Notes: generated by a model not told the origin, from the letters alone. DNA of 64,000 nucleotides from Neoechinorhynchus agilis (GCA_051530055.1 CM121341.1:1612001-1676000); one strand, 5' to 3'; positions 10,091 through 35,260 are shown, counted from the stretch's first letter. Made by a program: numbers and translations.

Positions 10091-10139
10091 ATTGTTCAAG
10101 AGTTACTCTCGTTAGTTGGTAGCGGCCGTGTGGTGTGCG

Positions 10140-13100: not shown

Positions 13101-13150
13101 AGAATTTGGCGGGAGGTGGCGAGTGTGCTTCAAACAGTATGTTTGAGTTG
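10140..13150 (+). mobile_element. CRE-clade-like non-LTR retrotransposon with RT and restriction-like endonuclease, fragmented by stops and frameshifts
   Basis: Zinc-finger remnant GLRTH (~10225). RT motifs GGIRPIAV, QLGCC..GAEAIVH, DFRNAFNS, GVQQGDPLGP, WYLDD, LPVSSGGLG. CCHC knuckle (CRCG..CRR..RHSEIN) and RLE motifs (PDG..WREGKCLLWDAT, FVPFGVETYG, QRGNAASV). 5' boundary approximate. Confidence 0.85.
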
Positions 13151-14164
13151 TTAAAAATATAAATCTATATCATTAAATTCTTTATATCTATTTTAAATGC
13201 ATCCACAAAATTACATGGATTTGAACAGATTATTTATCTCTTCAGTTCTTAATATATTGCGCTCAATCAAATATCACTTTTAATCGGAAACATAACTTCT
13301 GAATTCCTATCATGATTTATCTTCAATATTAAGCCGTATTTCGAACTATTTCAAGCGAAACTCATTTTTACAAATAGAATTTTTTCAACCAAAATCCCTT
13401 CGAATTTCTCGGTAAAGCTTTAACGAAAAGCGTGATGCTACTTAAAGAAACGAAAAGCACGAAGGGAACAAACTCTTCATAATACTTTTTTATAACCAAT
13501 TATCAAATAATTGATTTATTTTTATTCGATAATTTTCCGCCTTCGCGTAGGTCTTCTTCAGTCTATCTAAAATGCACCCAAGAAGCGCCATATTTCGTTT
13601 ATTCGTTGGTATCCACAGATTGTCGTCATAATAAACGTGATTGTTACTTTTTTCCATAGAAAATATCGATTAAAGGTTGATAATTTAGGAATTATTGCTT
13701 AGGTCTACTACACCCGGTAAATGATTATTAATTAAAGACGTTATAATTCCAATCACATTCGCCGCTATCTGACATATCGGCATTTCTAATTTTAAGGACA
13801 TTTTTCCTTCAGCTATTACAAACTTTAGAGACAATAAAATAAAGTCTATTAAATCATTAATGCTTAATTTTAATTCTTGGGAACTTTAATTCCTTAACAC
13901 AATCGTACAAATGAATATAAACTTCAGTTAAGGTCGACACCGAATTTAAAGTATACCAACGATACTAAACTATCCATTGTACATTTGTCTTCTAATTCGC
14001 ATATAAAATTCCACATCTTCCATTTTCCGCGTTGTTTACCGTTACAAAAACTTGTTGTTTCATAAAAAGCATTGCAATTCACGGTCTAATCAACGTTCGT
14101 TCGAGAGCTTAACATCACAGCTCAATCTAAAAGCTCATATTTCGATCACCTCTTTATTGAAATA

Positions 14165-14737
14165 ATGGTAAAACGAATGCCGGTTGAACTGAAGACTATT
14201 CAACAGATCTGCCATGAGCTGAACGAGTGCCTGGGAGACGGACGCTCCATTCGATATCATCCGTCAATCAACCAGAATTTGAGTGAACTTTTATCAAGGC
14301 CAATGGATTTCGATGAGATAAGAAAATGTAATATTGAATCAATTGTTAAACGCTTAAGTTGCTCTGAATTTGGAAAGTACTACTTCTGGTTTCCGGACTT
14401 CATGAACGAGAAAATTAAGAAATGCAAGGCTGAAGAGGCATCGAAACTTAAACCAAAAAGAAGGCCAAGTAAGAAAGTTGTAAGGGACGAAAAGAGACGG
14501 GCTATGTTGAATCGGAAATTCCAAATTGACGCCGAAAGCTCTAAACACGAAAAAGTTGATATTTTTGAACTTTATTGCCGGATCAGAGACAAAAGACAGG
14601 GATTGTCTAATGATTGTCGCCGTCAACTGTCGTGTCTCGCTGGACGAAAGCGGGCCAGAATTCATGATGAGGAATCCGAAATGGAGAAACAAACGAAGAA
14701 TCCGAGACTCGTTGACGAAAAAGAGAAGATCGCCTGA
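14165..14737 (+). CDS. Unknown 190-aa K/R/E-rich protein, copy 1 of 4; N-terminal helical region weakly resembles a TFIIS-N (LW)/Elongin A domain
   Basis: Intact ORF in four copies. Versus the 22501 copy I count 5 synonymous codon differences (AGT/AGC, CGC/CGA, AAG/AAA, GAG/GAA, AGA/AGG) and 3 nonsynonymous ones, supporting coding in this frame. The domain call rests only on LSELLSRPMDFDEIRKCNIESIVKRL. Confidence 0.6.
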   Translation: MVKRMPVELKTIQQICHELNECLGDGRSIRYHPSINQNLSELLSRPMDFDEIRKCNIESIVKRLSCSEFGKYYFWFPDFMNEKIKKCKAEEASKLKPKRRPSKKVVRDEKRRAMLNRKFQIDAESSKHEKVDIFELYCRIRDKRQGLSNDCRRQLSCLAGRKRARIHDEESEMEKQTKNPRLVDEKEKIA

Positions 14738-15196
14738 GAATCCAAAAGTAATCCTGGTCGATAGGCCGATCGCTTTTCAGGGGAGAGAACATTCTAGGTG
14801 AAGGATGAGGAAATGGAGGAGGATCCAAGGAAATGGAGGGCGATAAAATAGTGATCAATAATTGCTGTTTATTTAGTTTATTTATATTTTTTAACGTGCA
14901 GAATATATTCCTATCGCTCTGTTTATACTTTGAAAATAACGAAACGAAGAAACGACAAAGTACTTCTCACTTTTTTGGCTGAGATTTGACTCGACCAAAA
15001 TATTTATTATCGTTGCGTATCGATCCCTGAAGAGAACTGTGTTTGTTGCTGTAGTTTTAAAAAGGTGTTGTATTTACCGTCGCCGCGAACACATCTTTAC
15101 TTTTTAAACCTAAAAATTCCATTTATTATACAAAAATTACTTATAAAACCCGTTGTATTAATCTGCTGAATATACACATTTTTTATTTAAAGAAGA

Positions 15197-15255
15197 TTTT
15201 AAGCGTTCTGGTTTTGAGCTAATCGTTTCACTCAATTCCTTCATTTAGCCTAAAA
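15197..15255 (-). promoter_or_regulatory. SECIS element of the minus-strand SELENOW copy
   Basis: Reverse complement of the SECIS at 62090-62148, immediately 3' of the stop codon. Confidence 0.8.
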
Positions 15256-15263
15256 ACTCGACT

Positions 15264-15661
15264 TTACTCTGACGACATTTTTACAGCATCAGCAATCTTC
15301 TTTATATCCGCTGGTGTTGGGAACTTGCCCGTGTTCTTAAGACGTTTGATTAGAGATCCGAAAAGCACGTATCTATTTATCTCACATCTTTAGAGAACAT
15401 CAACTCGCCGTTCAATTTAACTTCGAACAAACCAGTGGGGAGCATAGTTGCCTCAGATGTCTAAACTTTCAATTTCAGTGAACCGCATTAATGTCAAAAA
15501 CCAACAAAGTTGACTTCTTCACTTTTCCCGACTTCTGATATAAGAGCTTTTTTCAATCTCTCATACAGATGTTCGTAACTTCAGACTCCACTAGAAAAGA
15601 CTATTTATTAAGCTTTATTTTGAACTCACCAATAAATAACGTGAACTTGCACTGGCGACAT
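15264..15661 (-). CDS. SELENOW: Selenoprotein W-like (Rdx family), 4 exons, 87 aa, Sec UGA at 15581-15583
   Basis: Mirror copy of 61684-62081, with the same CGVU motif, introns and SECIS. Confidence 0.88.
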
Positions 15662-17627
15662 AGAGAGAGTGCGAATTTTCGGGCTTAGTTTAGGATTCTT
15701 CGTACTAATGCGAAATCGAGTCATTTCAACTTTTCTTGTAGGTGTAATTTCTGATGAGTAATCCATGAATGACTGTGATTCACTTTAAAAAGTTGAACTG
15801 GTGGGAAATGCAATTTTTTGTTAGATTGGCGTTTTATTATATAATGCATTAAGCATGTTAATATTTATTCGGAATTTAACTATTCAGCGAAAATATTTTG
15901 ATGATTAGTTTTAATCCGAGGAATTTGCGGTTTGTTTTTACTTTTTAACATGACTGATTTTTGAAAACATCAAAGTAGAAAAAAATACTCCTCGAGAAAG
16001 ATTATATTTAAAATTTGAAAAATGCACTCGCTTTCTCTCGAAAATCGCGAAAATTTCGGAAATGCTAAAAAACGGATAAAACTGAACTTGCAAAAGCAAT
16101 ATAAACTTAGCAGATCGACGGTTCAAGAACATGTTTGCAATACACATATTTTCCCCCATTTCTGCAAAAAAACGATAAAAATAATTCTAATATTAGTGAT
16201 CCCAAAGCAACCAATGATGGAGCGCTTTTGCGATGCTCTTCGAAAATTCCAGATATTTTTTAAAACTGCCTTGATTTCACATCTTATTGAGAAAAACGAA
16301 AACAGAAATGACTTTTGTAATCGATAAGTAACCATTTAAATTTTTATCAGCACTAATGACACAAACGCCAATCAATCCTTATAAGTTATTGGAAAACGAA
16401 CAAATTTGCTTATTATACTTTTGGTGAAAATAATCCCGATCGTAGCATATTGGATTAATTTGAAATATTTCACGACATAACCTCGCCTCCTCTAACCCCG
16501 ATAAAATTTGCTTATAATCAACAAGAAATTTTTGGCTTTCTTGGAAATTCTTGTGAAACATATAATAAACTTTTATTAACAACGATCTCACAGTTTACAG
16601 CTGAATGAGAAGCTTGCTTGTTAAAATTAAATACGATCTTCAAGAATCTCCTTGCTTAAAAATCGATTGCACCACTCGCAATTCATTGTTTTAGCTGAAC
16701 ATCCGATTTGAATTTTTTCATATAAATTAACGCACCAATTAAAGCACATCAATAAGCACGATGCAAAGTAGCCACTTCGGAGCATCTTTATTTGTACTGG
16801 GCAGTTGAGAGAGGCAAGACTTACGAACTGTCTCTTGCTACATTACTCAAAGATCATATTTAAGGAGCAATATTTTCCCGATTTTGCAGATCATCAGCTC
16901 CGTCAAAGGTTTTTTTATACACATCGCAATGAACATCTCTTGTTCGCATGGAAAGTATCGTCAAGAATATTCATCCTTTTTTTCGATCTTTTCACAATCG
17001 TTTTGCATACCGCCACGCACGGAACGTATTCACAGTTAACCAGAAACGTTAACGTCTATTCCGATTTCAAATCGATTGTTGACAGGATAATGAAGTTTGA
17101 TTGGAACATTATGGAGGTCAACATCATAACGAACTATCAAACGCTAAGAAAAGCTTGTTTCATCAGAGTTGCGAGACCACTTAAAATATACTAACAAAGA
17201 TATTAAAGACGGCAAATTTCGATACTTTGCTCATCACCTCAATAAAATTTGGACGTTATATGCTTAAATAGAGTTTACTGCCATTGTATGAAGGAACAAG
17301 GAATCCTTTGCCTTGTTTAATGTACGATACCGTAGAACATTTGCCAAGAAATATGCTTAGAAGTTTTACAAAATACTTTTCCTACATCGTGACATGGAAT
17401 TTTTTCTATCAGCATTATAGATTTATAGTAAAAGAGAAACAAGAAGATTAGAAGGAAATCGTTTCGTACAAAATAAATTGTTTTTTCTTTTTTGGAACTA
17501 AAGTTACACATGAAATCATTCACACCACCGCTCTGGATTACTGAGCTGCCGTCCCGGTGTAACGGTCGAAAGGACGAATGCAGTGTTCCCTCTCGTTGCT
17601 TAGTTAGATTTATGTTTTGCAGGAGGA

Positions 17628-20600
17628 ATGCTCCTGCCCTCTCTCCTCAAAATAACTTTAATTTCACCATTCGTAGCCTCGCTCTTTCTTAACAGGGGAT
17701 ACAAACTCCTTCTCAACTTTCGTTTCGTATCTATCAACCTAAAAAACGCATCATCGAGTTTTTCTTCATGCCCTCCAAACTCAACCCAGAACTCATCTTC
17801 CCAATGTAACCCATCTCTCTTAGCAAAAACCCACGAACATCTTAAGCATCTCAAAAACTCGCAGAGTAAGCGACTCCCCAACTTCTGTTACTACGTGCAA
17901 ACACGCAGGCGCCCGAATAACAACAAAGGTAAATTTCCCAACCGTTCCACATTAAATACTATCTTTTTCCCGAATCAAGTAAATAATTATCGTTGTACCT
18001 CCACACGAAAACTCCATAAATCAGGCTTATCCACATGTAGTCTCAACCCGAAACGCGTTCCTATCACAACCAATCACTAACGCAAACACAAATTTTCGAT
18101 TCGCTTCCGGACTTCTCTCTTTGAGAAAATCAATCGTTTTAAATCAGCAACTTGTAACGATTCCTCCCTTAATTTATCAGACGCAACGAACAATGCAACC
18201 CCAATCTTCCTCACCTCCGCCGTCGATTCCATCCCAGATTTACCGAAATCCAAAAGTCCCTTACCCACCGTTTTCTACTCAAATACTCGTAGCCTCCTTT
18301 CTAAACAAGATGAAATTTCACTCATTTCATCCACCTCAAAAGCCGACGTAGTCATCTTAACTGAAAGTGTCAGCTATACTTCCCGGTAACTCTTCCTTCC
18401 ATACAAACCGTGAGGACTGTCCAGGAGGGGGTCTCAATTTACCTACGGCAATGGCTACCTTACTCTTTATCTCTCACAGACTCTCTTCGAAACTCCGATT
18501 TAGAATTCATCCCAGTCCATTTCATAGCTCCTCTGGGAAACGGAATTAGAAAATTCACCCCTACTTGAGTCCTCCTTGCTCCAAATTGATTCTATGATGG
18601 AGCTCATAAACTCCACAATCTCACACCATTTCTTAATTGCAGGGGACTTCAATAATCTATTTCCTCTTCTACCTTCTCCGAGTTCTATTTGAACTCTTCT
18701 ATTCGTCCTCTTCTATCGGAAATAGCTGGGCCAAAGAGCTCACGGCTGTCAGCGCCACCTGAACAGCCCGTACCCACCACGGTGATGAGCTTCGACTGAC
18801 GCTTTCGTTGCCTCCGGCGACAGTTTCTCTCATTTCGACGCTCAAGTCGTCGGCGAGAGCTACGACGCCCTCGCTTTTTCCCGTTGCACTGGTGGATTTT
18901 GTTGCCCCCGTTAGCTGCCGCATCACCAAGTGGAGCGGCACACCGACCCCACGTTGACTCGCTACTATCAGTAGCTGTCTGACTGCCAGAGCTCCTTCTT
19001 TTGCGTGACCGACACGAATCAGTAACATGAAGTCCGATCATCGTGAAAGAAAGTTAGGGACCTGAAAGAAAGAATCCCCAAGAAATGCTGCTCGGCAAAG
19101 GTGGAGGACTACAGAGTTATATCCTTGATGTCCATCGCGGCAAAACTTTTCAGCAGCATTTTGAGACGCCGAATTCAGCCAATCCTCGAACCGTTTCTAA
19201 GAATTGAACAGAACGGCTTCAGGAAAGGTCGAGGCACCACAGAGCACATATTGGCTTTGAGGAGGATCCTCGAGGGGGGACGAATTCATCAAACGGATGT
19301 GACGCTGGTATTTGTTGATTTCCGTCGAGCTTTCGATTCGGTAAATCGAACGATGATTGGCGGTATCTTAAAGGAGTATGGAGTGCCGCCGATCATTGTT
19401 ACATCCGTTATGGCATTATATAAAAACACAAGGTCCGCCGTCAAGACAGCTGACGGTTTGACAGAATACTTTTCCACTACTTCAGGTGTTCTGCATGGCG
19501 TCACATTGACTCCTTTCCTCTTCATCTTGGTGCTTGATTGGGTAATGAGATGGGCACTATCGAATGATGAAGATGGATTTCTTCGGTTGAGGAAAAGAGG
19601 TCGCAGGTATCCTGAGATACACGCCTCCTACATGGCATATGCCGACGACATCATGTTGATGTCCTCAACAGTCGAAGGAGCTCAACGCATGCTAAATAGA
19701 CTGTGCGAGAGGGCGAGTATGATTGGTCTGACGATCAACTCGAAAAAGACGGAATTCTTGACGATTCCGCATGTGGCGCATACGGTCTCTGGCGAAGGGC
19801 AGAATGGCGTTGGGCAATTAAAACAGATAGAGCGGTATGTCTATCTGGGAGCTGTCGTTCCTGAGGTGAGTGCGGATGTCAGCCGACGGAGAGCTATAGC
19901 TTGAAGAGCAATGGGGCAACTTAAACCACTGTTTGACAGTGAGTCTTTGCCAGACGAACTCCGCTCGAAGCTGTTCAGGACTCTAATTGAGAGCATTCTC
20001 TACTACAATGCAGAGACCTGGACACTGTCACCAACGGCGACGAGGCAGTTGGACCAAAATCATTCATCTCTCTTACGTGCGGCGTTCAAGCTCAGATGGT
20101 CAGTAAAGTGACCAACAAAGCACTGTATAAGAGAGCCGGAGTCCAACCGCCCAGCGAATATTTGCGCCGCAGACGACTGCAGTTCACGGGCAATATAATT
20201 CGGTCCGAGGCATCTTGCCCACAGGTCGTGCAACAGTTTCTTTTCTGGAAGCCAACGACATTGTATCGTAAAGGCAAAGGGAACTGTCGTGCATACGATG
20301 ACCTGATTTTAAGAGACGCGAATTGCCCGCATAACACGACTGCTGTCGCGTATTTTAGATCCCTTGCGGAGTCTAATTCTATTTGACGGGCTTATACCTA
20401 CGGTGCAACGTAGGAAAGTACCGTTGGGTACAATACAATTCTCCGAGTTGCTTCAACGTATTGACTTCCTGATTCGTCTTGATGTTCACCTCGACAAAGT
20501 GTTCACAAATATCGACGCCTACTCATCCGCCTCTAAACTCCCTCTCCCCGCGAACTCCACCATTTCTCTGCCCTTATCATTCCCTCCACCCCACCTCAGC

Positions 20601-22140
20601 GTATGAAATCTACCCGTTTACCCATCTCGGATAAACGTGATCATCACATCTACAAATGCGATATGTGAGGTACCGAGGAATATGATTAGAATTATTGTTA
20701 GAACTAATGATGAACCCGAAGAGGTTCGAAACGTCTTTAATAAATAATCATTTACCGGCTGCAGACCTAAACAATAATTCTACTCACATCTACAATTTTA
20801 TAAAATTGTTCAACTCAAATATTCGCACATTCCATTTTGGTAAAACAAATGACCCTTCCTTGTTCACGTCATCTCTAACTTCAATTAAAAAAATCCCTAA
20901 GTACGACAATTCCCAAGAAATTCATTAAAATCTCCAACCGTGAGAAACCTGGATAACCCCCATTTTGAAACTTCTTCAAAGGCAAGCTTCTAAGGACCAT
21001 CGCAATAACTCTCAAAACTTTCCCCGTTTAAAAAAAGAACTAACCAAATAATTGTTGCCCGCAAAAACTGGCTTTCCTTCAAAATTCGTTCAGATCGCAA
21101 TTGAACATGGTGGCGGGCCGTCAAGGACTCTATTGGTCTACTCAACCCTGATCCCTTCCCAAATTTGTTCCTTTTCTGAACTAAAACATGTTCTAGACTC
21201 CATCAATCAGAACCTCTGCCCTGACTCAAATTATAATCATTGTTCCACATCAAACTCTACCCAAAACTATAACTAATACAACTGACACTTTTGTCAACTC
21301 GCCGATACTCCCCTTAGTTTCGTCATATAAAGCACTACAGCGTCTCAAGAAATTATCTCGAAATTCGTCCTCTCAATTTGAAATCGCATACCGGGCTCTT
21401 CGCTACATCGTCCCCGAACTCATAGACCCTCTTACGCATATTATAAATCACAGCTTTTTATATTGCATCTACCCCTCTTGCCTTAAAACTGCCAAAGTTA
21501 TACTCGTTCCGAAAAAAGGGCATCCGATTTCCACCGAATCATTCCATCCAATATCCATTTTACCCGCTCTTTCAAAAATCATCGAAAAATGTTTTAAATC
21601 TCGCCTTCTTTCACTTTTCAATCAAAAGTTATCGCCCCTGAAATTCGGCTTCCGGCCAAAATTTTCTACAAACGATGTCCTATTTTGCATTTATAATACG
21701 CTTCTATGTAACTTCAACAATTATTCCTCCCACGTCACCGTCTCATTCAACTTGATTTATCGAAAGCTTTCGACTCAGTGGACCATTCAATCCTCGGGGA
21801 GTGCTCCGATTTATGTCTGAACTTAACGCAGATAAGCTGGCTCGCCTCTTATCTTCACAATCGCAAACAATACATTCACTGCCGATCTACTTCCTCAATC
21901 ATCAAATTTCTCACCAAAGGCCTACATCAAGGTGCTATGCTGTCACCACTTCTTTTTAATATTTTCCTAAACAACCACATTCCTCTCTCCTCTCACTTTG
22001 AACTTTTCTTAAATGCCGACGATATCACCCTCATCACCCATTCATCACCCCACCTCTCCTTCTGATTTTACATCCAGCAAAATACCCCTCCCGCCGAATG
22101 CCTTAATGAAATCATCATCAAAAAATCAAAACGCCTCTCA
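17628..22140 (+). mobile_element. Decayed APE-type LINE (CR1/L2/jockey-like), interrupted by an RTE insertion and truncated at the palindrome
   Basis: APE motifs (DVVILTES, GGG, IAGDFN before 18685; LDKVFTN after 20450). RT motifs (PSCLKTAKV, PISILPALSKIIEK, FGFRP, DLSKAFDSVDH, QGAMLSPLLFNIF, NADDITL) in 21400-22065. Confidence 0.85.
18685..20438 (+). mobile_element. 5'-truncated RTE-clade retrotransposon with an inverted 5' segment, (TACAA)2 tail and 11-bp target-site duplication
   Basis: RT ORF YRVISLMSIAAK..EQNGFRKGRGT..FVDFRRAFDSV..GVLHGVTLTPFLF..YMAYADD (19101-19904) plus C-terminal fragments. TTCTCCGAGTT at 18674-18684 and 20439-20449. TACAATACAA at 20429-20438. Confidence 0.88.
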
Positions 22141-22500
22141 ACCCTACCACGTCAAGGCCCTCTTTGTCCCAGCCGGCGCGGTGTCCTAGATGCCAATACG
22201 GGGAATCGCGGTTGGATTTCTCAATCTAGACGACGGTTATAGTTTTTACCAATTTACAAATTTAAGGTTTCAATTTAAATATTTATGTCACAACGACCCT
22301 TTTCTGTTCAATGTGTGACGTGAGTGAGTTTTTAGTGCCGCTTATTTCAAAATTCGAACCGTATCAACATCCCATATTTTCACTCTCGGAATTGTTTATC
22401 AAAAACATTGCAATTCACGGTCTAATCAACGTTCGTTCGAGAGCTTAACATCACAGCTCAATCTAAAAGCTCATATTTCGATCACCTCTTTATTGAAATA

Positions 22501-23100
22501 ATGGTAAAACGAATGCCGGTTGAACTGAAGACTATTCAACAGATCTGCCATGAGCTGAACGAGTGCCTGGGAGACGGACGCTCCATTCGATATCATCCGT
22601 CAATCAACCAGAATTTGAGCGAACTTTTATCAAGGCCAATGGATTTCCATGAGATAAGAAAATGGAATATTGAATCAATTGTTAAACGATTAAGTTGCTC
22701 TGAATTTGGAAAATACTACTTCTGGTTTCCGGACTTCATGAACGAGAAAATTAAGAAATGCAAGGCTGAAGAAGCATCGAAACTTAAACCAAAAAGAAGG
22801 CCAAGTAAGAAAGTTGTAAGGGACGAAAAGAGACGGGCTATGTTGAATCGGAAATTCCAAATTGACGCCGAAAGCTCTAAACACGAAAAAGTTGATATTT
22901 TTGAACTTTATTGCCGGATCAGAGACAAAAGACAGGGATTGTCTAATGATTGTCGCCGTCAACTGTCGTGTCTCGCTGGACGAAAGCGGGCCAGAATTCA
23001 TGGCGAGGAATCCGAAATGGAGAAACAAACGAAGAATCCGAGGCTCGTTGACGAAAAAGAGAAGATCGCCCGAGAATCCAAAAGTAATCCTGGTCGATAG
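22501..23100 (+). CDS. Unknown basic protein (TFIIS-N-like?), copy 2; probably extended by a 33-nt intron (23084-23116) and a further exon
   Basis: Near-identical to 14165-14737, but CGA replaces the TGA stop. Splicing GTAATC..TTTCAG gives ..IARESKRERTCEVKDEEMEEDPRKWRAI.. Confidence 0.6.
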   Translation: MVKRMPVELKTIQQICHELNECLGDGRSIRYHPSINQNLSELLSRPMDFHEIRKWNIESIVKRLSCSEFGKYYFWFPDFMNEKIKKCKAEEASKLKPKRRPSKKVVRDEKRRAMLNRKFQIDAESSKHEKVDIFELYCRIRDKRQGLSNDCRRQLSCLAGRKRARIHGEESEMEKQTKNPRLVDEKEKIARESKSNPGR

Positions 23101-24766
23101 ATCGATCGCTTTTCAGGGGAGAGAACATGCGAGGTGAAGGATGAGGAAATGGAGGAGGATCCAAGGAAATGGAGGGCGATTAACTCTAAAATTTTATTCA
23201 TAATTCTCCAACATGTAAATAATTTGCGATCATTTTACAAGAGCACATTTTATCTATTCATCGGCCGAAAGGGGATGAAATTTATCTCTGTTGTTTTATA
23301 GTGATAATAGGAGACTACTGCGTTTGTTCTTTAGGTTTTAAATTTTCAACATCAATTACAAATTATTTTACATTTAGGGCGCCGAACAATTTTGGTATTT
23401 TTCTTTAATATATTCAATTTATATTTTTGCAGATTGAACTATTCTTGCTTCACCACATAAACAAACATTCAATTTAGCACAAATATTTTACTCCAATACT
23501 TTTTTGATGGTTGCCTAGTAATAATGGGTATCCATTACTTTTATGATTTAGCAAAAGCAAAAAATGTCCACAACACCGCATTTGGATAAATTAGAAAATA
23601 TGCCACATTTTCAATTGATTGATGCAGTAACCAAAGAAATATTGGAAAGCACCGAAAATTTCGTACCTACAGAAAAGGTTTTCTTACGAAAAATACATTC
23701 TATATTTGTCATATTGAATAGAATCAAGAATGCAGAGATATAGTATTTGCAACAGTAATGGAACAATTCGCAATATTCGTAAGTATGCCAAGTTAGCGGT
23801 TGCATTTTCATCTTTAATTTGCAGCCGCAAGTATGTACAAATGATCTAAAAAATTGCATTGTAAATTTGTTAAATAAACAACATAGAATTTCAGCAAAAG
23901 AGAAACAAAAACATTAGAAGAATATCGTTTCGTTCAAAATAAATTGCGTTTTTTAATTTTGAAACTAAAGTTACACAGAATGCGATGAAGATAGATTTTA
24001 GAAATGCGAAAATTTAATATTTTCATGCAAAAAAAGTTAATATATTATAAAACATAAAGGGTTTCAATTATCCCCGAATCGCAATGCCGAATTCAAATCA
24101 TTTTTAATAGCACTTTAACATTAAATAATTAGTTTTTTGAAATTAATCAGTGCAGCATTGACTAATATAAAACGAGATTGAGTGATATCTTGTGATCTAT
24201 AGAAACATTAATGGAAATGCATTTAATTTCTTGCTCGTGATTTTTAAATACACAAGCCATTAGATTCATCAGATTTAAAATATACATTATATTAAACACA
24301 ATGAATAATCTTGTCATTACCATAGAGAATTTCACTTATAATTTCCAGAATGCCTTAAAGTATTGTAAGATGACTTAGGAATAACAAGGAAAATTATTTG
24401 AGCGATAGCGTTCAAGATTTAATGATTGCGGTGTCATTTTATTCAATACACTAAATTATCAAATGCTTACACACGTTATGTTTTCAGGGGAATTAATTAA
24501 ATATTTGTTGGATAATTTCTACTTATAGATCGATTGAGCATATCAGCATTTGAAGGAGTACTTTTTATAAAAATTATAATACCTAAAATTTCTATCAAAA
24601 AATTTCCTCCTTCATGTAGCGTAAAAATTCACGAATAACGGTCCTTCAAAATTTACTTCGACGATATCTTCTCCTTAATCGATTCAAGTTTAGTATTAGA
24701 AAATTTTCTTTGCCCCTAAATTAACACGTTATTTTCAGTATAATGAAAAACAAATTATTTATATTT

Positions 24767-25906
24767 TCATTCAAACATACTACGGGGATTATTTCCCTTG
24801 CGAATCCATTCTTCACATGTTTGAAATTCTTCGATTATATTTTCAAATTGTGCATCTTGGCAGACTGACTTGGCTACATTGTAAAGGTCAAAAGGCTCCT
24901 CGATGTTTATGAAAACCGTCAATCCGGGAAGGAGAAGATTGCGATAATCCTCTACATCGGCATCGATGATTCTGAATATATTTCCCTTGCGGACTGAAAT
25001 TACATTTGATTGAAAATCAAACGTTGAATAGTGGTATAAAAATAGAACAAACAGTTCTGCGATCGTCTTCGTATTATAAGGCACAAACGTGAGACCCTCC
25101 AAGGCTTTTTCCATGTCATCGTGCTCCTTATTAATTTCTTCAAGTGTTCGTTGTGTATCGAATAATTGAGGCATTATTTCATGAAGACATGGTAGCACAG
25201 GTGGTTTGCAAACGGTTTGAAGGAAGTTAATTGCCATCAAGCACAAAGCATAGCTTGAAAGAGTTCCTATACAAGGAGCGTTAATGTTGTACTTAGAAGC
25301 CCAGCGTTTTATGCAGAAGATTAAAGGAGTCACTCGCTTATCAATCGCCATATATGCATGAATCAAATGAGTGTTTCGCACACATGAGTCATGTGTCATA
25401 TTTAAATCAACTTGAAATCCAAAATCATTATCATCAATTGTTAAACTCGACCATTTAAAACGTAAAATCGGTACTCTGGCTTTGATTACGATCTGGCTTG
25501 TTGCTTGCGGAATATCATCCAAAATATACTTTATGGCATAAAGACAATTGATTGCAATATCTCGCTCCAAAGAAATTCCTGAATCACAAACGAGACACAA
25601 ATCAACATCACCGGAATTTCGCGAGAGCCCCGTCAGGGTGGATCCGGTTACATATAACTTTGTTCTTGGAAATAGCGACACCATTACAGCAGCTATGCAG
25701 TCGCGCATTTTTAATTTAATTTTTAAAGTTTCTGGAGTTGTTTTGTTCTGCGTATAGATTGAGGTCATGCAATGATTAAGAGCGATAAAGTCAATGTTTG
25801 CAAAAAAGGATTGTCGATATGACATTGACTGAAAAATCGTGCAATTATCGTCTCTTGTTGGCGGGGTAGCCAGAGTATATTTGAACGTTGGTTGCTTTAT
25901 TGACAT
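24767..25906 (-). CDS. GLD2: GLD-2/TENT2-like non-canonical poly(A) polymerase (terminal nucleotidyltransferase), 379 aa, intronless
   Basis: Pol-beta nucleotidyltransferase motifs GS..DVDLCL and QVDLN, RNTHLI, GTLSSYALCLM, PPVLPCL, and a PAP-associated domain (FDF..VISVR, IEEPFD..NVAKSV). Catalytic aspartates intact. Confidence 0.85.
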   Translation of the reverse strand: MSIKQPTFKYTLATPPTRDDNCTIFQSMSYRQSFFANIDFIALNHCMTSIYTQNKTTPETLKIKLKMRDCIAAVMVSLFPRTKLYVTGSTLTGLSRNSGDVDLCLVCDSGISLERDIAINCLYAIKYILDDIPQATSQIVIKARVPILRFKWSSLTIDDNDFGFQVDLNMTHDSCVRNTHLIHAYMAIDKRVTPLIFCIKRWASKYNINAPCIGTLSSYALCLMAINFLQTVCKPPVLPCLHEIMPQLFDTQRTLEEINKEHDDMEKALEGLTFVPYNTKTIAELFVLFLYHYSTFDFQSNVISVRKGNIFRIIDADVEDYRNLLLPGLTVFINIEEPFDLYNVAKSVCQDAQFENIIEEFQTCEEWIRKGNNPRSMFE

Positions 25907-26746
25907 CTATACAAAAATGTGAATTGTAGTAACACCTTTAGAGATATTTGTGGTAGAAAAGCGAATTATGCGACGAGGAGATCTTTTAGAGAAGACGATG
26001 TAATGACTTGCTCAACATGATGGGGTAATAATTTTATAATCACCTGATAATTTAGATGAACTGAACCAATTATATCGATCGTATTATTCAACTAAAGAAT
26101 GCACTGATTATAAAAACATTATTATGTAACAACCTATCAAAACGCAACAAAGATTACAATGCAATTTTTTTGCTTTATTAAGTTCATCTTCCAACAGAAA
26201 ATGCTATAAGTAGAAAATGATCATAGACTGCGAAAATAAATCAACGGTACGATTTTTAAGGTCGAAAATCTAACCAATAAGGTTACAAAGGATTTAGTAA
26301 GTTCGATTACTTCGAATCTGATTGGCTACATAATAAAGTTACAAAGGATTTAGTAATCGAGTACTTCGAACCTTATTGGTTAGATTTTCGACCTTAAAAA
26401 TCGTACCGTTGATTTATTTTCGCAGTCTATGATCATTTTCTACTTATAGCATTTTCTGTTGGAAGATGAACTTAATAAAGCAAAAAAATTGCATTGTAAT
26501 CTTTGTTGCGTTTTGATAGGTTGTTACATAATAATGTTTTTATAATCAGTGCATTCTTTAGTTGAATAATACGATCGATATAATTGGTTCAGTTCATCTA
26601 AATTATCAGGTGATTATAAAATTATTACCCCATCATGTTGAGCAAGTCATTACATCGTCTTCTCTAAAAGATCTCCTCGTCGCATAATTCGCTTTTCTAC
26701 CACAAATATCTCTAAAGGTGTTACTACAATTCACATTTTTGTATAG

Positions 26747-27886
26747 ATGTCAATAAAGCAACCAACGTTCAAATATACTCTGGCTACCCCGCCAACAAGA
26801 GACGATAATTGCACGATTTTTCAGTCAATGTCATATCGACAATCCTTTTTTGCAAACATTGACTTTATCGCTCTTAATCATTGCATGACCTCAATCTATA
26901 CGCAGAACAAAACAACTCCAGAAACTTTAAAAATTAAATTAAAAATGCGCGACTGCATAGCTGCTGTAATGGTGTCGCTATTTCCAAGAACAAAGTTATA
27001 TGTAACCGGATCCACCCTGACGGGGCTCTCGCGAAATTCCGGTGATGTTGATTTGTGTCTCGTTTGTGATTCAGGAATTTCTTTGGAGCGAGATATTGCA
27101 ATCAATTGTCTTTATGCCATAAAGTATATTTTGGATGATATTCCGCAAGCAACAAGCCAGATCGTAATCAAAGCCAGAGTACCGATTTTACGTTTTAAAT
27201 GGTCGAGTTTAACAATTGATGATAATGATTTTGGATTTCAAGTTGATTTAAATATGACACATGACTCATGTGTGCGAAACACTCATTTGATTCATGCATA
27301 TATGGCGATTGATAAGCGAGTGACTCCTTTAATCTTCTGCATAAAACGCTGGGCTTCTAAGTACAACATTAACGCTCCTTGTATAGGAACTCTTTCAAGC
27401 TATGCTTTGTGCTTGATGGCAATTAACTTCCTTCAAACCGTTTGCAAACCACCTGTGCTACCATGTCTTCATGAAATAATGCCTCAATTATTCGATACAC
27501 AACGAACACTTGAAGAAATTAATAAGGAGCACGATGACATGGAAAAAGCCTTGGAGGGTCTCACGTTTGTGCCTTATAATACGAAGACGATCGCAGAACT
27601 GTTTGTTCTATTTTTATACCACTATTCAACGTTTGATTTTCAATCAAATGTAATTTCAGTCCGCAAGGGAAATATATTCAGAATCATCGATGCCGATGTA
27701 GAGGATTATCGCAATCTTCTCCTTCCCGGATTGACGGTTTTCATAAACATCGAGGAGCCTTTTGACCTTTACAATGTAGCCAAGTCAGTCTGCCAAGATG
27801 CACAATTTGAAAATATAATCGAAGAATTTCAAACATGTGAAGAATGGATTCGCAAGGGAAATAATCCCCGTAGTATGTTTGAATGA
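26747..27886 (+). CDS. GLD2: GLD-2/TENT2-like poly(A) polymerase, second palindromic copy with identical protein
   Basis: Exact mirror of 24767-25906 in the ORF track. Confidence 0.85.
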   Translation: MSIKQPTFKYTLATPPTRDDNCTIFQSMSYRQSFFANIDFIALNHCMTSIYTQNKTTPETLKIKLKMRDCIAAVMVSLFPRTKLYVTGSTLTGLSRNSGDVDLCLVCDSGISLERDIAINCLYAIKYILDDIPQATSQIVIKARVPILRFKWSSLTIDDNDFGFQVDLNMTHDSCVRNTHLIHAYMAIDKRVTPLIFCIKRWASKYNINAPCIGTLSSYALCLMAINFLQTVCKPPVLPCLHEIMPQLFDTQRTLEEINKEHDDMEKALEGLTFVPYNTKTIAELFVLFLYHYSTFDFQSNVISVRKGNIFRIIDADVEDYRNLLLPGLTVFINIEEPFDLYNVAKSVCQDAQFENIIEEFQTCEEWIRKGNNPRSMFE

Positions 27887-29552
27887 AAATATAAATAATT
27901 TGTTTTTCATTATACTGAAAATAACGTGTTAATTTAGGGGCAAAGAAAATTTTCTAATACTAAACTTGAATCGATTAAGGAGAAGATATCGTCGAAGTAA
28001 ATTTTGAAGGACCGTTATTCGTGAATTTTTACGCTACATGAAGGAGGAAATTTTTTGATAGAAATTTTAGGTATTATAATTTTTATAAAAAGTACTCCTT
28101 CAAATGCTGATATGCTCAATCGATCTATAAGTAGAAATTATCCAACAAATATTTAATTAATTCCCCTGAAAACATAACGTGTGTAAGCATTTGATAATTT
28201 AGTGTATTGAATAAAATGACACCGCAATCATTAAATCTTGAACGCTATCGCTCAAATAATTTTCCTTGTTATTCCTAAGTCATCTTACAATACTTTAAGG
28301 CATTCTGGAAATTATAAGTGAAATTCTCTATGGTAATGACAAGATTATTCATTGTGTTTAATATAATGTATATTTTAAATCTGATGAATCTAATGGCTTG
28401 TGTATTTAAAAATCACGAGCAAGAAATTAAATGCATTTCCATTAATGTTTCTATAGATCACAAGATATCACTCAATCTCGTTTTATATTAGTCAATGCTG
28501 CACTGATTAATTTCAAAAAACTAATTATTTAATGTTAAAGTGCTATTAAAAATGATTTGAATTCGGCATTGCGATTCGGGGATAATTGAAACCCTTTATG
28601 TTTTATAATATATTAACTTTTTTTGCATGAAAATATTAAATTTTCGCATTTCTAAAATCTATCTTCATCGCATTCTGTGTAACTTTAGTTTCAAAATTAA
28701 AAAACGCAATTTATTTTGAACGAAACGATATTCTTCTAATGTTTTTGTTTCTCTTTTGCTGAAATTCTATGTTGTTTATTTAACAAATTTACAATGCAAT
28801 TTTTTAGATCATTTGTACATACTTGCGGCTGCAAATTAAAGATGAAAATGCAACCGCTAACTTGGCATACTTACGAATATTGCGAATTGTTCCATTACTG
28901 TTGCAAATACTATATCTCTGCATTCTTGATTCTATTCAATATGACAAATATAGAATGTATTTTTCGTAAGAAAACCTTTTCTGTAGGTACGAAATTTTCG
29001 GTGCTTTCCAATATTTCTTTGGTTACTGCATCAATCAATTGAAAATGTGGCATATTTTCTAATTTATCCAAATGCGGTGTTGTGGACATTTTTTGCTTTT
29101 GCTAAATCATAAAAGTAATGGATACCCATTATTACTAGGCAACCATCAAAAAAGTATTGGAGTAAAATATTTGTGCTAAATTGAATGTTTGTTTATGTGG
29201 TGAAGCAAGAATAGTTCAATCTGCAAAAATATAAATTGAATATATTAAAGAAAAATACCAAAATTGTTCGGCGCCCTAAATGTAAAATAATTTGTAATTG
29301 ATGTTGAAAATTTAAAACCTAAAGAACAAACGCAGTAGTCTCCTATTATCACTATAAAACAACAGAGATAAATTTCATCCCCTTTCGGCCGATGAATAGA
29401 TAAAAAGTGCTCTTGTAAAATGATCGCAAATTATTTACATGTTGGAGAATTATGAATAAAATTTTAGAGTTTATCGCCCTCCATTTCCTTGGATCCTCCT
29501 CCATTTCCTCATCCTTCACCTCGCATGTTCTCTCCCCTGAAAAGCGATCGAT

Positions 29553-30152
29553 CTATCGACCAGGATTACTTTTGGATTCTCGGGCGATCTTCTCTTTTTC
29601 GTCAACGAGCCTCGGATTCTTCGTTTGTTTCTCCATTTCGGATTCCTCGCCATGAATTCTGGCCCGCTTTCGTCCAGCGAGACACGACAGTTGACGGCGA
29701 CAATCATTAGACAATCCCTGTCTTTTGTCTCTGATCCGGCAATAAAGTTCAAAAATATCAACTTTTTCGTGTTTAGAGCTTTCGGCGTCAATTTGGAATT
29801 TCCGATTCAACATAGCCCGTCTCTTTTCGTCCCTTACAACTTTCTTACTTGGCCTTCTTTTTGGTTTAAGTTTCGATGCTTCTTCAGCCTTGCATTTCTT
29901 AATTTTCTCGTTCATGAAGTCCGGAAACCAGAAGTAGTATTTTCCAAATTCAGAGCAACTTAATCGTTTAACAATTGATTCAATATTCCATTTTCTTATC
30001 TCATGGAAATCCATTGGCCTTGATAAAAGTTCGCTCAAATTCTGGTTGATTGACGGATGATATCGAATGGAGCGTCCGTCTCCCAGGCACTCGTTCAGCT
30101 CATGGCAGATCTGTTGAATAGTCTTCAGTTCAACCGGCATTCGTTTTACCAT
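29553..30152 (-). CDS. Unknown basic protein (TFIIS-N-like?), copy 3
   Basis: Mirror of 22501-23100 with identical translation. Confidence 0.6.
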   Translation of the reverse strand: MVKRMPVELKTIQQICHELNECLGDGRSIRYHPSINQNLSELLSRPMDFHEIRKWNIESIVKRLSCSEFGKYYFWFPDFMNEKIKKCKAEEASKLKPKRRPSKKVVRDEKRRAMLNRKFQIDAESSKHEKVDIFELYCRIRDKRQGLSNDCRRQLSCLAGRKRARIHGEESEMEKQTKNPRLVDEKEKIARESKSNPGR

Positions 30153-30280
30153 TATTTCAATAAAGAGGTGATCGAAATATGAGCTTTTAGATTGAGCTGT
30201 GATGTTAAGCTCTCGAACGAACGTTGATTAGACCGTGAATTGCAATGTTTTTGATAAACAATTCCGAGAGTGAAAATATG

Positions 30281-30515
30281 GGATGTTGATACGGTTCGAA
30301 TTTTGAAATAAGCGGCACTAAAAACTCGCTCACGTCACACATTGAACAGAAAAGGGTCGTTGTGACATAAATATTTAAATTGAAACCTTAAATTTGTAAA
30401 TTGGTAAAAACTATAACCGTCGTCTAGATTGAGAAATCCAACCGCGATTCCCCGTATTGGCATCTAGGACACCGCGCCGGCTGGGACAAAGAGGGCCTTG
30501 ACCGCTAAGGTTGAT
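30281..30515 (+). ncRNA. Candidate HDV-like self-cleaving ribozyme
   Basis: L3 TCCCCGT (30449-30455) closed by P3 GAT/ATT. P1' GGCATCT pairs with GGATGTT (30281-30287, G1-U wobble). J4/2 GCTAA (30504-30508). P2 CAACC/GGTTG. Imperfections: 2-nt gap between P2 and P3, A before the P1.1 GG, weak P4. Confidence 0.3.
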
Positions 30516-30809
30516 GGGCAAGTCTGCCAAGAACCCTGAACATTAGAAGACAAATGGGGTACTGGTGGAAGTCTTCAAAGGTGATCTTGAATCAGCGAAG
30601 GAAGATTATGCCACTCGGAGGCTACAAAATGGCGGACTTCGACAAACTAAGACTCCGGAGACCACTAAAATCGTCGATCCTTACCTTCGTCTCAAATTCT
30701 AGTTTTGTCATGGACCAAGCTCAAATCCCAGTAACACTCGAGGGCGGCTTAGGGTCCATAATAAATCAAGATACGGCTAGGGCGTCCCCGGAATTCGATG
30801 CGAATTAAC

Positions 30810-32200
30810 GTCGTTAAGAAAGTTATTTTACCCAAAGGAAAAATCAAGAAAATATCTCGACCATCGGATGTCAACATTATAGCGGCAAAGAATCTCGGCT
30901 AAAACATCGAAATTACTGATAGCCAAATTAGGCAGTTGGTTGAAATAAAAACGTTTTTATGAGATCGATCACAGTAAAAGCAATTTTTTTAGCAAACATG
31001 GAGTGCCCCAACGATCTCCGCTTTCATTAACTCTATCCGCGATCGTAATGGCTTTCTTAATGAAAAATTTTCGGAAACACAAATTTGTTCATTCTTTGAT
31101 CTACGCGGACGATGTGTCCTTATTCACCATAAAGGGCGGAGATAGTTGCTAATACGACTAAAAGCTTTACGAATACCATGAACAATATTTTATCGAACGT
31201 CAAGCTGGCTGAAGTGTTTCGTGAAAGAGACTTTTAATCATGCTTCCAACAAAGTTTTGGGTAAAGATTTGCCCTACTAAGGGTCTCGGCGTGTAAATGA
31301 TACCCCTCTCCGAGGCTTCTTTTTCAAACTAAAAACTCTTACTTCAAGACAAATTTCTACATCTATTCTTAATAAAGGCATTCATCGGAGGGAAAAGCTT
31401 TTGGCTGTTACTTCATTAGAAACCATTGGAGAGTACTTGGAATGAAGAATTCACTTATATCTTTTTTGCTAAGAATCATGTTAGGTAAAATAGTAAGAGT
31501 TGTGTTCTTTATAGTAATAAACTTTTTTTAACTTTAGAATAGACATCACCAACTGGAAAACCTATACAAATTAGCGAGGACTCACAAGATTGGATATTCG
31601 ACATAATGTCAGGACTGGACAATAAGGGCAAACGATGGATAATTATCGACAGCCGAAAAGCTTTGCTATTTCTCCTTTAATTTTTCTTTTAAATCCATAT
31701 GAATGCTTAGTTTTCAAAGTCATTATTTGAGCAGAGTCTAATAAAGGCACAGCTAACGTTTAGGGTCAATTCATTTTTAGCCATTTGCATTATCTCAACG
31801 CCAAATTGTTCTATTCGCCTATAATCAAACCAACAATGGCGAGCAATTCCTGTGGTGTAAAATAAATATTTGTTAATAATCGATAGAGGGAAAATCAAAT
31901 TAGAATTGTTGTGAGCATGTACCCCAGGGCATGCCTTAAAAAATACTTGTGTCAGAGCGCTGATCATGTTGCATCGTAGAAGTTAACTAACTTCAAAGTG
32001 TCTATTACTAACAACCTCGATAAACGTGTACAAGATTGTGCTTTCGAAATCAATCGGAACCAATAAATCCTTTTAATTCTTAAGCCAGATACAAACATGA
32101 ACAATTCAATCTTCAAACACTAACTTCAAATTAACGACTCAATCATCTTAAACCGAAAGCTTATCGCGCTAAAAAACATTTCAGGAGTAGCGCGCCAGAG
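30810..32200 (+). mobile_element. Decayed LINE RT fragment with internal deletion, similar in style to the 7.7-10.1 kb element
   Basis: Remnants VILPKGK..YRP, NFFSKHGVPQRSPLS, IYADDVSL (~31100), LFYSPIIKP (~31810). Boundaries approximate. Confidence 0.7.
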
Positions 32201-32556
32201 GCTTTTGATCACAACGATTTTTTGGTTTGGTTTTATGGTAAACGGTAATGCGCGAAAGAACCTTTAATTTGAAATCAAGTAGACGTTTCAAGATTTTAAA
32301 ATGAACTCGACGAGGTTCGAAATGTTTTCAATCAAAAGTTATTTACTGGGTTGCGGCTACTAAACAATAATCTCGGAAGGTGTTTTCTTATCTTAAGGAC
32401 TTGACCTACAAAGCTCTGCTTCCTGTTTAAACTCCTTTAAAATGAATGTATTTGTAGTGATGTAGTAATATAACGATTGACGGTGTCGTCACATGATAAT
32501 TATTTGGCACTTGGTGCCGTGTTATAGTGTGAGCGTGTGTTCGTTGTTAAATATAT

Positions 32557-34319
32557 ATGCGTTCACCTAACACAGATCAGAGCACGACATTTGATGACGA
32601 GAGTAGGATTTCAATGATGCAGTCCCTCATAGAGAAGCAGGAACTAATGATTAAACAAACGGGACAAACAAAGCTGTACGAGAATAAAATCGAGCAAAAA
32701 CATAGAGATATACAAGTGTTTCGGTCTTTCGATCCTAATAGCGAGACTTGGGATGATTATGAGGTCAAAAGATTTAGAATCGTGCGGGGTTGAAACCTAA
32801 GACGTAATGCAGGCTTGCTTGTTGGCGTGGAGCAGTCCGCAGATTTACGCAAAGGTTCGGAAAAGTTTGGGCACGAGAAAACCCAGTGATTGCTCTTTCG
32901 AAGAGTTGAAAAATATCATATCGAAGTTATACATCCAACAAGTACACGAGGTAGCTGCACGATATCGTTTTAGTAAGACCCAAATGAAACCAGGACAAGG
33001 TTATAAGGATTGGATATCAGAGCTATGGGACGTGTCAATAGGATGCAATTTTTTTAAATCGGAAGTGCAGGATGTGCAAAAAGCTACCGAGATGCGGATT
33101 CGTGATACAGTAATATTAAACATCCCACACGAGCGAAATACGAAGATCTGCCTTCCAACATAAGAACCTGACACTCGAACAGCTGGGAACCATCATCGAC
33201 AGTTGTGAAGTTTCGAAAAAGGCATTAGAGATAGTACCAAGAGTGGAGAGTGTGGAGTCGTCCGTGGAGAAGATTCACGCCAATAATCCCAAACTGGAGC
33301 GTACACGAAACGAGTTCAAAGGAAGGTGCAAGTATTGTGCAGGGAAACATTAGGAGGGAAAATTGTGCTGGGCCAGAAACGCTAAATGTTTCAAATGTGG
33401 AAAAATGTGACACCTAGCTCGATGCTGTTCATCTGTCTCCAAGATCAATGTAATCAAGAATATTAACGAGGTTGAAGCAGTAAAAGGTGATGAATACAAA
33501 GATGGTGTTTACGGTGAAGTTCAAAGGCATATTTGTAGTATCCTCGGTAGTAAGAGGGCGGAAATTTCATTATTTATTGAAGGGGTGAGGGCAAGGATGG
33601 AGTTCGATACAGGAGCTGCGCAGTCAATAATCACACGCTTTTTATGGTTCCGAATCGGAGAACCAAAATTAAGACTAACAAATACGCTAAGAGCTTTTGG
33701 AGGAGCGGAAATCGAGAATCTGTGAAGATGTGAAATGAATGTAAAGTTGGGCAGGAAGTTGAAAAAAGTCGAAGCAGTGGTAGTGCCAGAGTCAGGCAGA
33801 TGTCTGTTTAGGCTACCATGGGTTTTGGAATTTGGTTTGAAGATTCCAGTGGAACTCGTAGAGGTGCACAATGTCGACTTGGAAAGAAGGGATAGAGGCG
33901 AAGCATTATGTTCGAAATTAAAGAAATCGTTCCCGTCAATGCTTAACAATGAACCGGAGCCTATGAGAGATTTCCAAGCAAGAATAGTTGTGAAAGAAGA
34001 CGCCAAACAACACATTTGTGGTGCGAGAAGGATTTCATTCGCGCCGCAAGATCCGTTAGAACAAGAACTTGATCGTTTATTAAAGTTGAAGATGTTGCCG
34101 CGTGTAGATGCGACTCAAGACGAAATAGAATGGGCCACGCCAATTGTAGTAGATAGGAAGACCAGAGGGAAGGTACGAATTTGTGAAGATTTCCGCGTAA
34201 CTCTTAATCAACATCTTCAAGTTGAATCATACTGCATGCCCACATTCGAAGAACTAACGCGGAAACTGGCGGGCGCCACACAATATAGCACCATTGATCT
34301 GAGGGACGCATATCTATAG
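32557..34319 (+). mobile_element. Decayed Ty3/Gypsy LTR retrotransposon (gag, protease, 5' half of RT), truncated; no LTR pair found
   Basis: gag remnants (FDPNSETWDDY; zinc knuckles CKYCAGKH..C and CFKCGK*H..C), protease MEFDTGAAQSII, RT WATPIVV..GKVRICEDFRVTLN..YSTIDLRDAYL. Confidence 0.88.
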
Positions 34320-34339: not shown

Positions 34340-34510
34340 AAAAATGTTTGATGCCACTTTTTCAAAATCCACCTTGTGCTAGGTTGTTTGCTCAGCGAAC
34401 CGAATCTGAGAAGAAGACTGATTCTTGAGGCCATTCACATCCGGGGAAATCCAACGATGGAAGGCAACAAATCAAACAACACGCCAGTTCTGCCAAAGTT
34501 GCGTTGCATG
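34340..34510 (+). mobile_element. Penelope-like element fragment (C-terminus of GIY-YIG endonuclease)
   Basis: LLSEPNLRRRLILEAIHIR..PTME matches the typical end of the Penelope GIY-YIG domain. Confidence 0.6.
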
Positions 34511-35260
34511 ACAAACCAATTAGTCGGCAACAAACCGCAAGAGCGATGTGCAGATCGAACCCCGTACACTTCGAGTATTAGCTAACCCGCGGATCTGAGC
34601 TGCATCCAGACGTGACCGGCTGTGCATGCTGTTGATGTCATCTTCATTTTAGATAGAGACTGAAGAGGCAAGGAAAACCTTGCGAAATATTTCTCAAATA
34701 AATAAATGAGTAACGACAACACCGAGGACAGGATTCGCCAACGTACAATTTTTATTAAAGATTGCATTCGGGGGCTAGCCAGACTGTTTTATGCGCGTAA
34801 TTATGATCAATAAAATTGCAATTAATTTGAAATATTTTCCTTTACAATTTCTTAGTCTTTTCTAAATATTCACTGTTAAATTCATTTAATATAACCAAAC
34901 CCAATATTACATACTAATACGTTATGATTGTTCGGCAGCTTCCTTGATGGCCGCGGCATTGCCGCGTTGGATTGCCGCGCTGATTCGCTGCATCAGGAAG
35001 CTGTTGGAGTGCATGTCGCCGGTTGCATGTTTTAGCATCTTTGCCAGTCGAAAAAGGAAATAATCGGTTTCTTTTCCGAGGTAGTTTAAAAATCGTGCGC
35101 CCTGTGTTCAATGAGCGATCACCCGGCCGAATTTGCTACCACCTGCGGTTGGAAATTCGAACTGAACAACAGCGATTTTTCTTGGGGGCCAGTGTCATGA
35201 ATGCCGTTTTCAAACTCGCTTCACCGCGAGGACCCTTTTGGTGATCTGTTGGACGATTTA

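Follow-up and report, generated by a model that had tools for sequence, protein, structure and literature searches.

We analysed a 64,000-nt stretch of the genome of the acanthocephalan Neoechinorhynchus agilis (C1:1,612,001-1,676,000; the window, from whose first letter all coordinates are counted unless a contig is named). It lies on C1, a chromosome-scale contig of 19,375,080 bp in an assembly of 46.2 Mb and 102 contigs, and contains a near-perfect palindrome that carries two copies of a GLD-2-like nucleotidyltransferase gene. An inverted-repeat search and a base-by-base comparison defined a left arm at 22151-26284 and a right arm at 26369-30502, each of 4134 nt, which are mirror images of each other on either side of an asymmetric, non-palindromic spacer of 84 nt (26285-26368). 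These coordinates agree exactly with those in an earlier note on this DNA. The comparison found exactly three substitutions and no indels between the arms, i.e., an identity of 99.93% or a divergence of 0.07%, and neither arm has an insertion, a deletion or a transposon of its own. The substituted sites (left/right) are 22325/30328, 23181/29472 and 23247/29406. All three are non-coding, being outside the open reading frames (ORFs), and lie 175, 1031 and 1097 nt from the outer end, i.e., within the outer 27% of the arm, which bears out the previous statement that the only three mismatches fall in the outer third. The chance that three uniformly placed sites would all lie so far out is (1097/4134)^3 = 0.019. 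Complementarity ends abruptly at both outer arm ends by direct comparison, and the window contains no N, including at the two junctions.

Each arm contains two convergent genes together with their upstream regions. The GLD-2-like gene is a single exon encoding 379 aa, at 24767-25906 on the minus strand in the left arm and at 26747-27886 on the plus strand in the right arm, and the two encoded proteins are identical. The two GLD-2 copies point away from each other, and the 840 bp that separate their start codons form a shared upstream region. The other gene is a basic orphan ORF of 199 aa (22501-23100 and 29553-30152), contained in a 790-bp cassette that occupies 22392-23183 on the plus strand and 29470-30261 on the minus strand. 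Both 379-aa frames and both 199-aa frames proved intact in the ORF analysis, so that the earlier description of two intact, divergent GLD-2 genes and two intact basic ORFs holds. Each arm also contains an 82-aa ORF (23611-23859 and 28794-29042) with no Pfam match.

The spacer and the centre of the palindrome occur only once in the assembly, and a search for an alternative contig with an un-duplicated centre found none, a point in favour of the explanation preferred below. Across the centre (26276-26385, plus strand) run two units, of 56 and 54 nt, that are repeated in tandem with 88% matches; unit 1 starts in the left arm and unit 2 ends in the right arm, and the spacer belongs to this 56-nt tandem duplication. 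Unit 1 begins with the innermost 9 nt of the left arm (AATAAGGTT, 26276-26284). This 9-mer shares 8 of its 9 positions with the start of unit 2, and its reverse complement forms the inner end of the right arm (AACCTTATT, 26369-26377), within unit 2. Because the left copy is thus in register with the tandem unit, the older sequence very probably already had a 9-nt inverted repeat with its two copies 84 nt apart. Such a repeat would explain the asymmetric loop and is required for a snap-back or template switch. A second, less exact correspondence was found at the distal junction. When the 18 nt directly before the left arm (22133-22150) are compared with the 17 nt that follow the right arm (30503-30519), the latter read as reverse complement, 12 of 18 positions agree, a score equalled by 14 of 2000 random 30-mers from the window (0.7%). 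Direct comparison found no direct repeat or target-site duplication at the outer arm ends, as had been reported before, and the conclusion drawn then, that the palindrome is not a clean insertion, is supported.

A third, partial copy of the arm lies 157 kb away on C1, at about 1,797-1,799.5 kb. It aligns to the right arm over 28619-30291 at 99.3% and over 30338-30658 at 98.8%, crossing the outer boundary at 30502, and goes on to 30801. At all three sites where the arms differ, the third copy has the right-arm base, and at 23181 the other cassettes have the right-arm base as well. All three differences are therefore assigned as derived in the left arm. Because the third copy continues across the right outer boundary, the comparison identifies the right arm and the right flank as the older contiguous context, the left arm as the new copy and 22150/22151 as the novel junction. 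That the left arm is a recognisable derived copy, and that there is microhomology at both junctions, had escaped the earlier note. The divergence between the arms (0.07%) compares with about 0.8% to the third copy and with 2-3.5% to and between the copies in a larger, outer repeat described below. A very recent origin, as proposed previously, fits the difference between the first two values. The third copy also has extra DNA at two places (L013, about 7416-7875) that is missing from both arms. One piece of about 330 bp, which appears to be a young short interspersed element, is flanked by an 11-nt direct repeat (TGTTCAATGTG) and has 90% identity to window positions 10121-10371. The other piece is about 108 bp long.

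The identity of the 379-aa protein was assessed from its domains, motifs and relatives. It matches Pfam PF22600 at 5.5e-24, as well as PF01909 (Pol-beta-like palm domain), and a poly(A) polymerase (PAP)-associated domain was found at residues 282-343 (PF03828, 5.7e-07, above the cut-off). No further Pfam domain was found in the protein, and hence no RNA-recognition domain, a function for which GLD-2 enzymes depend on partners; the catalytic core comprises residues 44-364. Alignment with Caenorhabditis elegans GLD-2 places the catalytic motifs at GS (88-89), DVD (100-102) and VDLN with D167, and S89 and D167 are invariant in the alignment of relatives. The closest solved relatives are worm and rodent GLD-2 (1e-36 to 4e-33, with the C. 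elegans protein at 1e-36), ahead of TUT4/7 and Cid1, and in a word search the top named database relatives are all GLD2-like proteins of molluscs and arthropods with 33-38% identity. Work on Cid1 and the TUT enzymes has linked a His at the nucleotide-recognition motif to the selection of uridine. In the motif of the N. agilis protein (IEEPFD-LY-N-VAKSV) this position is an Asn, as in GLD2-named proteins, whereas URT1-like proteins have His there. A maximum-likelihood tree separates GLD-2 from the URT1-like proteins at 100/100 and places the protein with the former, on a long branch. Domains, motifs, relatives and tree thus identify a predicted GLD-2-type poly(A) polymerase, grouping with GLD-2 proteins and not with TUT/URT1, mtPAP or TENT4, consistent with the earlier designation of the enzyme as GLD-2-like. 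The likeness to GLD-2/TENT2 comprises the Pol-beta-type nucleotidyltransferase domain with the PAP-associated domain, the GS...DxD...D motifs, the lack of an RNA-binding domain, the Asn and the grouping with metazoan GLD-2. Compared with the GLD-2 of other animals, however, the N. agilis protein is short (379 aa), lacks the long N-terminal extension and is only 33-38% identical. The NCBI gene models of the identical arms differ from each other, one giving 352 aa after removal of an in-frame 81-nt GT-AG intron and the other giving 313 aa from Met67. The annotated intron corresponds to window positions 27600-27680, with its mirror in the left arm, and lies inside the PAP-associated domain; it could be an exitron or else an error of annotation.

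Three intronless GLD-2-like lineages are present in N. agilis: the palindrome locus, a second on C3 (43% identity) and a third on C2 (39%). They form one clade (100/100) inside the GLD-2 side of the maximum-likelihood tree. The placement of these three fast-evolving lineages, with their long branches, is provisional. The C2 lineage (438 aa) itself comprises two gene-sized copies of about 1.8 kb in opposite orientation and 123 kb apart (C2:10,215,203-10,216,168 and C2:10,338,952-10,339,917), which are 98.9% identical in DNA and 98.4% in protein. On C3, a 116-bp piece (C3:950409-950524) copies, at 98%, the 99 nt upstream of the GLD-2 gene together with the first 17 nt of the coding sequence (MSIKQP). 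There it reads in frame into a fragment that is similar to a ubiquitin-conjugating E2 domain. The fusion looks like a patchwork of small duplicated pieces. The genome paper (PMC12690905), in its main text and one supplement, does not mention germline adenylation by GLD-2, and that supplement has no information on GLD-2 genes or palindromes.

The basic ORF is part of a unit with a wider distribution, a point that had also been overlooked. The 790-bp cassette, which comprises an upstream region, the 199-aa ORF and a short tail, occurs five times with sharp bounds: in both arms, at 14055-14847, at 62498-63290 and at the third locus (L013:7906-8697). The copies are 97-99% identical and lie in unrelated surroundings. 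Neither a poly(A) tail nor terminal inverted repeats nor a target-site duplication was found at the cassette. The ratio of nonsynonymous to synonymous differences per site (pN/pS) among the copies is about 0.2-0.4, based on few changes, and in the two outer copies a TGA ends the frame 9 codons early. Searches with the 199-aa ORF gave no Pfam or NCBIfam match and no usable ESM Atlas match, and the word search found no relatives outside the N. agilis genome. An AlphaFold single-sequence model is all-helical and unreliable (predicted local distance difference test score, pLDDT, of 53). Its motif may be reminiscent of TFIIS-N-terminal-type helical domains. The first 110 residues resemble a domain repeated in a multi-copy family of 670-aa ORFs (BLASTP 2e-09). 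Members of this family, of about 670 aa and with no Pfam match, were found at L033:2226-4238 (minus strand), at L034:3556-5568 (plus strand) and in at least 10 more places, and hold several repeats of a helical domain of about 60 residues that corresponds to the N-terminus of the basic ORF.

The flanks had been described as unrelated retroelement relics, which is correct in part. The two flanks are unrelated, and the left one contains reverse-transcriptase relics (Pfam RVT_1 at 19101-19904 and 21778-22065), the nearest of which is truncated and stops 52 nt short of the arm, but the label of retroelement relic could not be confirmed for the right flank. The first ~2 kb of the right flank are unique, except for ~300 bp just past the arm boundary that are shared with the third copy. 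Dispersed repeats begin at about 32450 and NUP205 at about 35818. A continuation of the right flank on the other side of the left retroelement relic, which would have indicated a longer, interrupted arm, was searched for and found nowhere to the left. Among the dispersed repeats, an older family of ~1.8 kb occupies about 32450-34300, and a high-copy repeat of ~357 bp at 34393-34750 has dozens of copies at 86-91%, often beside a 42-nt inverted piece. CKAP5 is located at 240-6675.

The palindrome is enclosed by an older and larger inverted repeat that had not been noticed before. Its arms (11020-16172 and 61178-66378; 5.2 kb) are 96.5% identical and lie ~45 kb apart, with the palindrome, NUP205 and a 12-kb satellite between them. 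An extra block pairs 10501-11337 with 67905-68735 at 93%, and the repeat thus continues past the window end at 64000. The older repeat and the inner palindrome are not concentric. Because an inverted repeat with arms diverged to 96.5% cannot be a read artefact, this region does make inverted duplications.

Taking these results together, we consider the palindrome, as assembled, likely to be a real structure. The explanation that we favour, and regard as probable, is an evolutionarily very young head-to-head duplication of a 4.1-kb C1 segment, formed by snap-back or by two template switches, so that the near-identity of the arms reflects recency. From the anatomy of the arms, their polarity and the microhomologies, all of which are shown here, we infer the order of events and their occurrence in vivo. 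Between the left and right flanks, the ancestral sequence would have held tandem units 1 and 2, then the GLD-2-like gene, repeat debris and the basic-ORF cassette. A nascent or broken end in the first 9 nt of unit 1 would have paired, over a distance of 84 nt, with the reverse complement of these nucleotides in unit 2, and this snap-back, or first template switch, would have been followed by backward copying for 4134 nt. A second switch, ~17 nt past 30502, would have returned synthesis to the original template via the 12/18 match at the end of the left flank. In the resulting sequence, the left flank would be followed by the inverted new arm, the loop of 84 nt, the old arm and the right flank, with both genes, the lineage-specific GLD-2-type gene and the orphan, doubled and no sequence lost. 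This two-switch model is the simplest one, and the ancestral allele that it predicts has 22150 joined to 26276. The three changes in the left arm would be either later mutations or errors of repair synthesis. Replicative repair is error-prone near breakpoints. Error-prone synthesis near the distal end could explain the three changes, in which case the structure may be younger than the 0.07% divergence suggests.

A review (PMC7999016) documents that palindromic duplications can form in yeast by snap-back at inverted repeats of 5-9 bp. According to the same source, a 52-bp spacer is enough to keep Alu inverted repeats from stalling forks in eukaryotic cells, and wild-type yeast stably maintains 6-kb Ty inverted repeats whose spacer is 280 bp. 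In view of these spacer data, the earlier expectation that the palindrome should be very unstable was overstated.

Several points, however, weigh against the young-duplication explanation. The 84-nt loop is wider than the spacers of 3-12 nt found in yeast snap-back (PMC7999016), and the significance of the distal microhomeology is only moderate. The un-duplicated allele was not seen. The near-perfect identity without indels is also what would be expected of an assembly or library artefact, i.e., a single-copy locus whose mirror copy came from a fold-back chimera, from gap closing or from a misplaced haplotype copy. Such a copy could have arisen by snap-back extended in end repair, from a template-complement Nanopore read or from gap closing with a read of this kind, and snap-back at the 9-nt inverted repeat is possible in vitro as well. 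The assembly was made from unamplified DNA, with 4.17 Gb of Nanopore R9.4 reads from about 50 pooled worms, filtered to a minimum length of 5 kb, about 17 Gb of Illumina data and very little HiFi (PMC12690905). MaSuRCA was run in hybrid mode with Flye, followed by purge_dups, instaGRAAL scaffolding with 10-N junctions and then TGS-GapCloser (PMC12690905). MaSuRCA builds both arms from k-unitigs of the pooled Illumina reads, so that the three differences could be allelic and are not proof of two copies. Both instaGRAAL and TGS-GapCloser were applied, and the latter may have filled gaps in the scaffolds. Furthermore, the palindromes of the 2013 draft genome of Adineta vaga (AV13) were artefacts of scaffolding phased haplotypes (PMC8494291).

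Nevertheless, we consider an artefact unlikely, because neither junction contains Ns, because there are two separate junctions with microhomology and because the Nanopore depth of the unamplified DNA is about 90x of 46 Mb, at which one odd read should not win the consensus. A fold-back chimera would cover the centre only, and the junction to unrelated DNA at 22150/22151, which has a microhomeology of its own, would need a second, independent chimeric event. Template-complement reads fold at the fragment end and would not give an asymmetric 84-nt loop, and a haplotig would have the same distal flank, whereas the outer flanks here are unrelated. The A. vaga draft, which came from a related group (Rotifera sensu lato), was likewise assembled from heterozygous material (PMC8494291). 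A palindrome of mis-scaffolded haplotypes of the AV13 type would be expected to have scaffold joins or gaps at the arm borders and arms with the same outer flanks, whereas the N. agilis locus has no scaffold gaps, an 84-nt spacer, differing distal flanks and microhomology at both junctions, with the reservation that TGS-GapCloser may have closed gaps.

If the palindrome is real, it could also be older than it looks, with arms homogenised by recurrent arm-to-arm gene conversion as in the ampliconic palindromes of sex chromosomes, a reading raised in the earlier note. The confinement of the differences to the outer 27% of the arm (p about 0.02) would fit conversion that is strongest near the centre, and the cargo belongs to a family known for germline roles. 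However, the crisp junction microhomologies, the intact spacer and the absence of arm indels and arm-specific transposons are simpler under recency, and the enclosing inverted repeat, having diverged to 96.5%, shows that homogenisation does not act throughout this region. We therefore regard an old, converted palindrome as quite unlikely. The main text of the genome paper (PMC12690905) contains no sex-chromosome or karyotype data. The primate X and Y ampliconic palindromes share with this locus near-identical arms (99.93% here), intact paired genes and a cargo family with germline functions elsewhere. They differ in having arms of 10 kb to Mb and spacers of kb, whereas the N. agilis arms are 4 kb and the spacer is 84 bp.

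Whether a real palindrome has been kept because it is useful is a separate question, and we consider this improbable in either of two versions. In the first, by analogy, the locus may be a small autosomal or sex-linked ampliconic palindrome that doubles a GLD-2 specific to this lineage and used in the acanthocephalan germline, and protects it via arm-to-arm conversion. In the second, transcription of the inward-facing basic-ORF genes may read through the centre and give a hairpin RNA of 4 kb, which would supply an endogenous small-RNA pathway directed at the GLD-2 paralogues. If either version were true, inverted duplication would be a recurrent mode of gene-family evolution in a compact, duplication-rich parasite genome.

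A structure made by a mobile or retroelement, i.e., a foldback-type transposon or a self-primed product of Penelope-like reverse transcription that captured host genes, was also considered. Penelope-like elements of A. vaga do mobilise host genes and build head-to-head inverted repeats (PMC3846280), and at this locus the genes are intronless and a reverse-transcriptase relic lies beside the left arm. We rejected this candidate on its copies, termini and target-site duplication and hold it to be highly improbable, since the 46-Mb assembly contains no other 8.35-kb unit or GLD-2 part, but only the arms and one partial copy that includes host flank; the outer ends lack a target-site duplication; the adjacent relic is truncated and 52 nt from the arm; no poly(A) tail or pseudo-long terminal repeat was found; a search of 21000-31500 gave no hammerhead or any other Rfam family, even at E<=1; and each arm comprises two convergent genes with upstream regions, contiguous with the older right flank.

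The rearrangement proposed here, a young inverted duplication, is of a known kind, and the palindromes in the assembly of a related rotifer were artefacts. If read data confirm it, the locus would represent an unusually clean natural case of interstitial fold-back or template-switch duplication, in which both junctions can be recognised and the template arm distinguished from the copy. The copy would be young enough that the un-duplicated allele may still segregate. The locus would also show a small genome of 46 Mb expanding a fast-evolving, intronless GLD-2 family.

Two known classes of rearrangement resemble the proposed duplication most closely. The Tetrahymena palindrome of ribosomal DNA is an example of the snap-back type. 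With snap-back palindromes, as known from yeast and Chinese hamster ovary cell models and from the fold-back inversions of tumours, the locus shares head-to-head arms, a short non-palindromic loop, a 9-nt inverted microhomology and one arm that is contiguous with the original flank. Unlike those systems, the N. agilis palindrome is interstitial and only 4.1 kb in size, has a second, closing junction and neither extends to the chromosome end nor forms a dicentric; its loop is 84 nt long, and it is found in a germline-transmitted reference genome rather than in a tumour or a mutant. The second class comprises fork stalling and template switching (FoSTeS) and break-induced replication mediated by microhomology (MMBIR), for which the model paper is PMC2621351. 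FoSTeS/MMBIR is known from inverted duplications at human genomic-disorder loci, and the N. agilis event is reconstructed from its product. It has in common with those loci two junctions with microhomology or microhomeology, an inverted copy that lies beside its template without loss of sequence, and base changes on the new copy, which here lie 175-1097 nt from the distal breakpoint.

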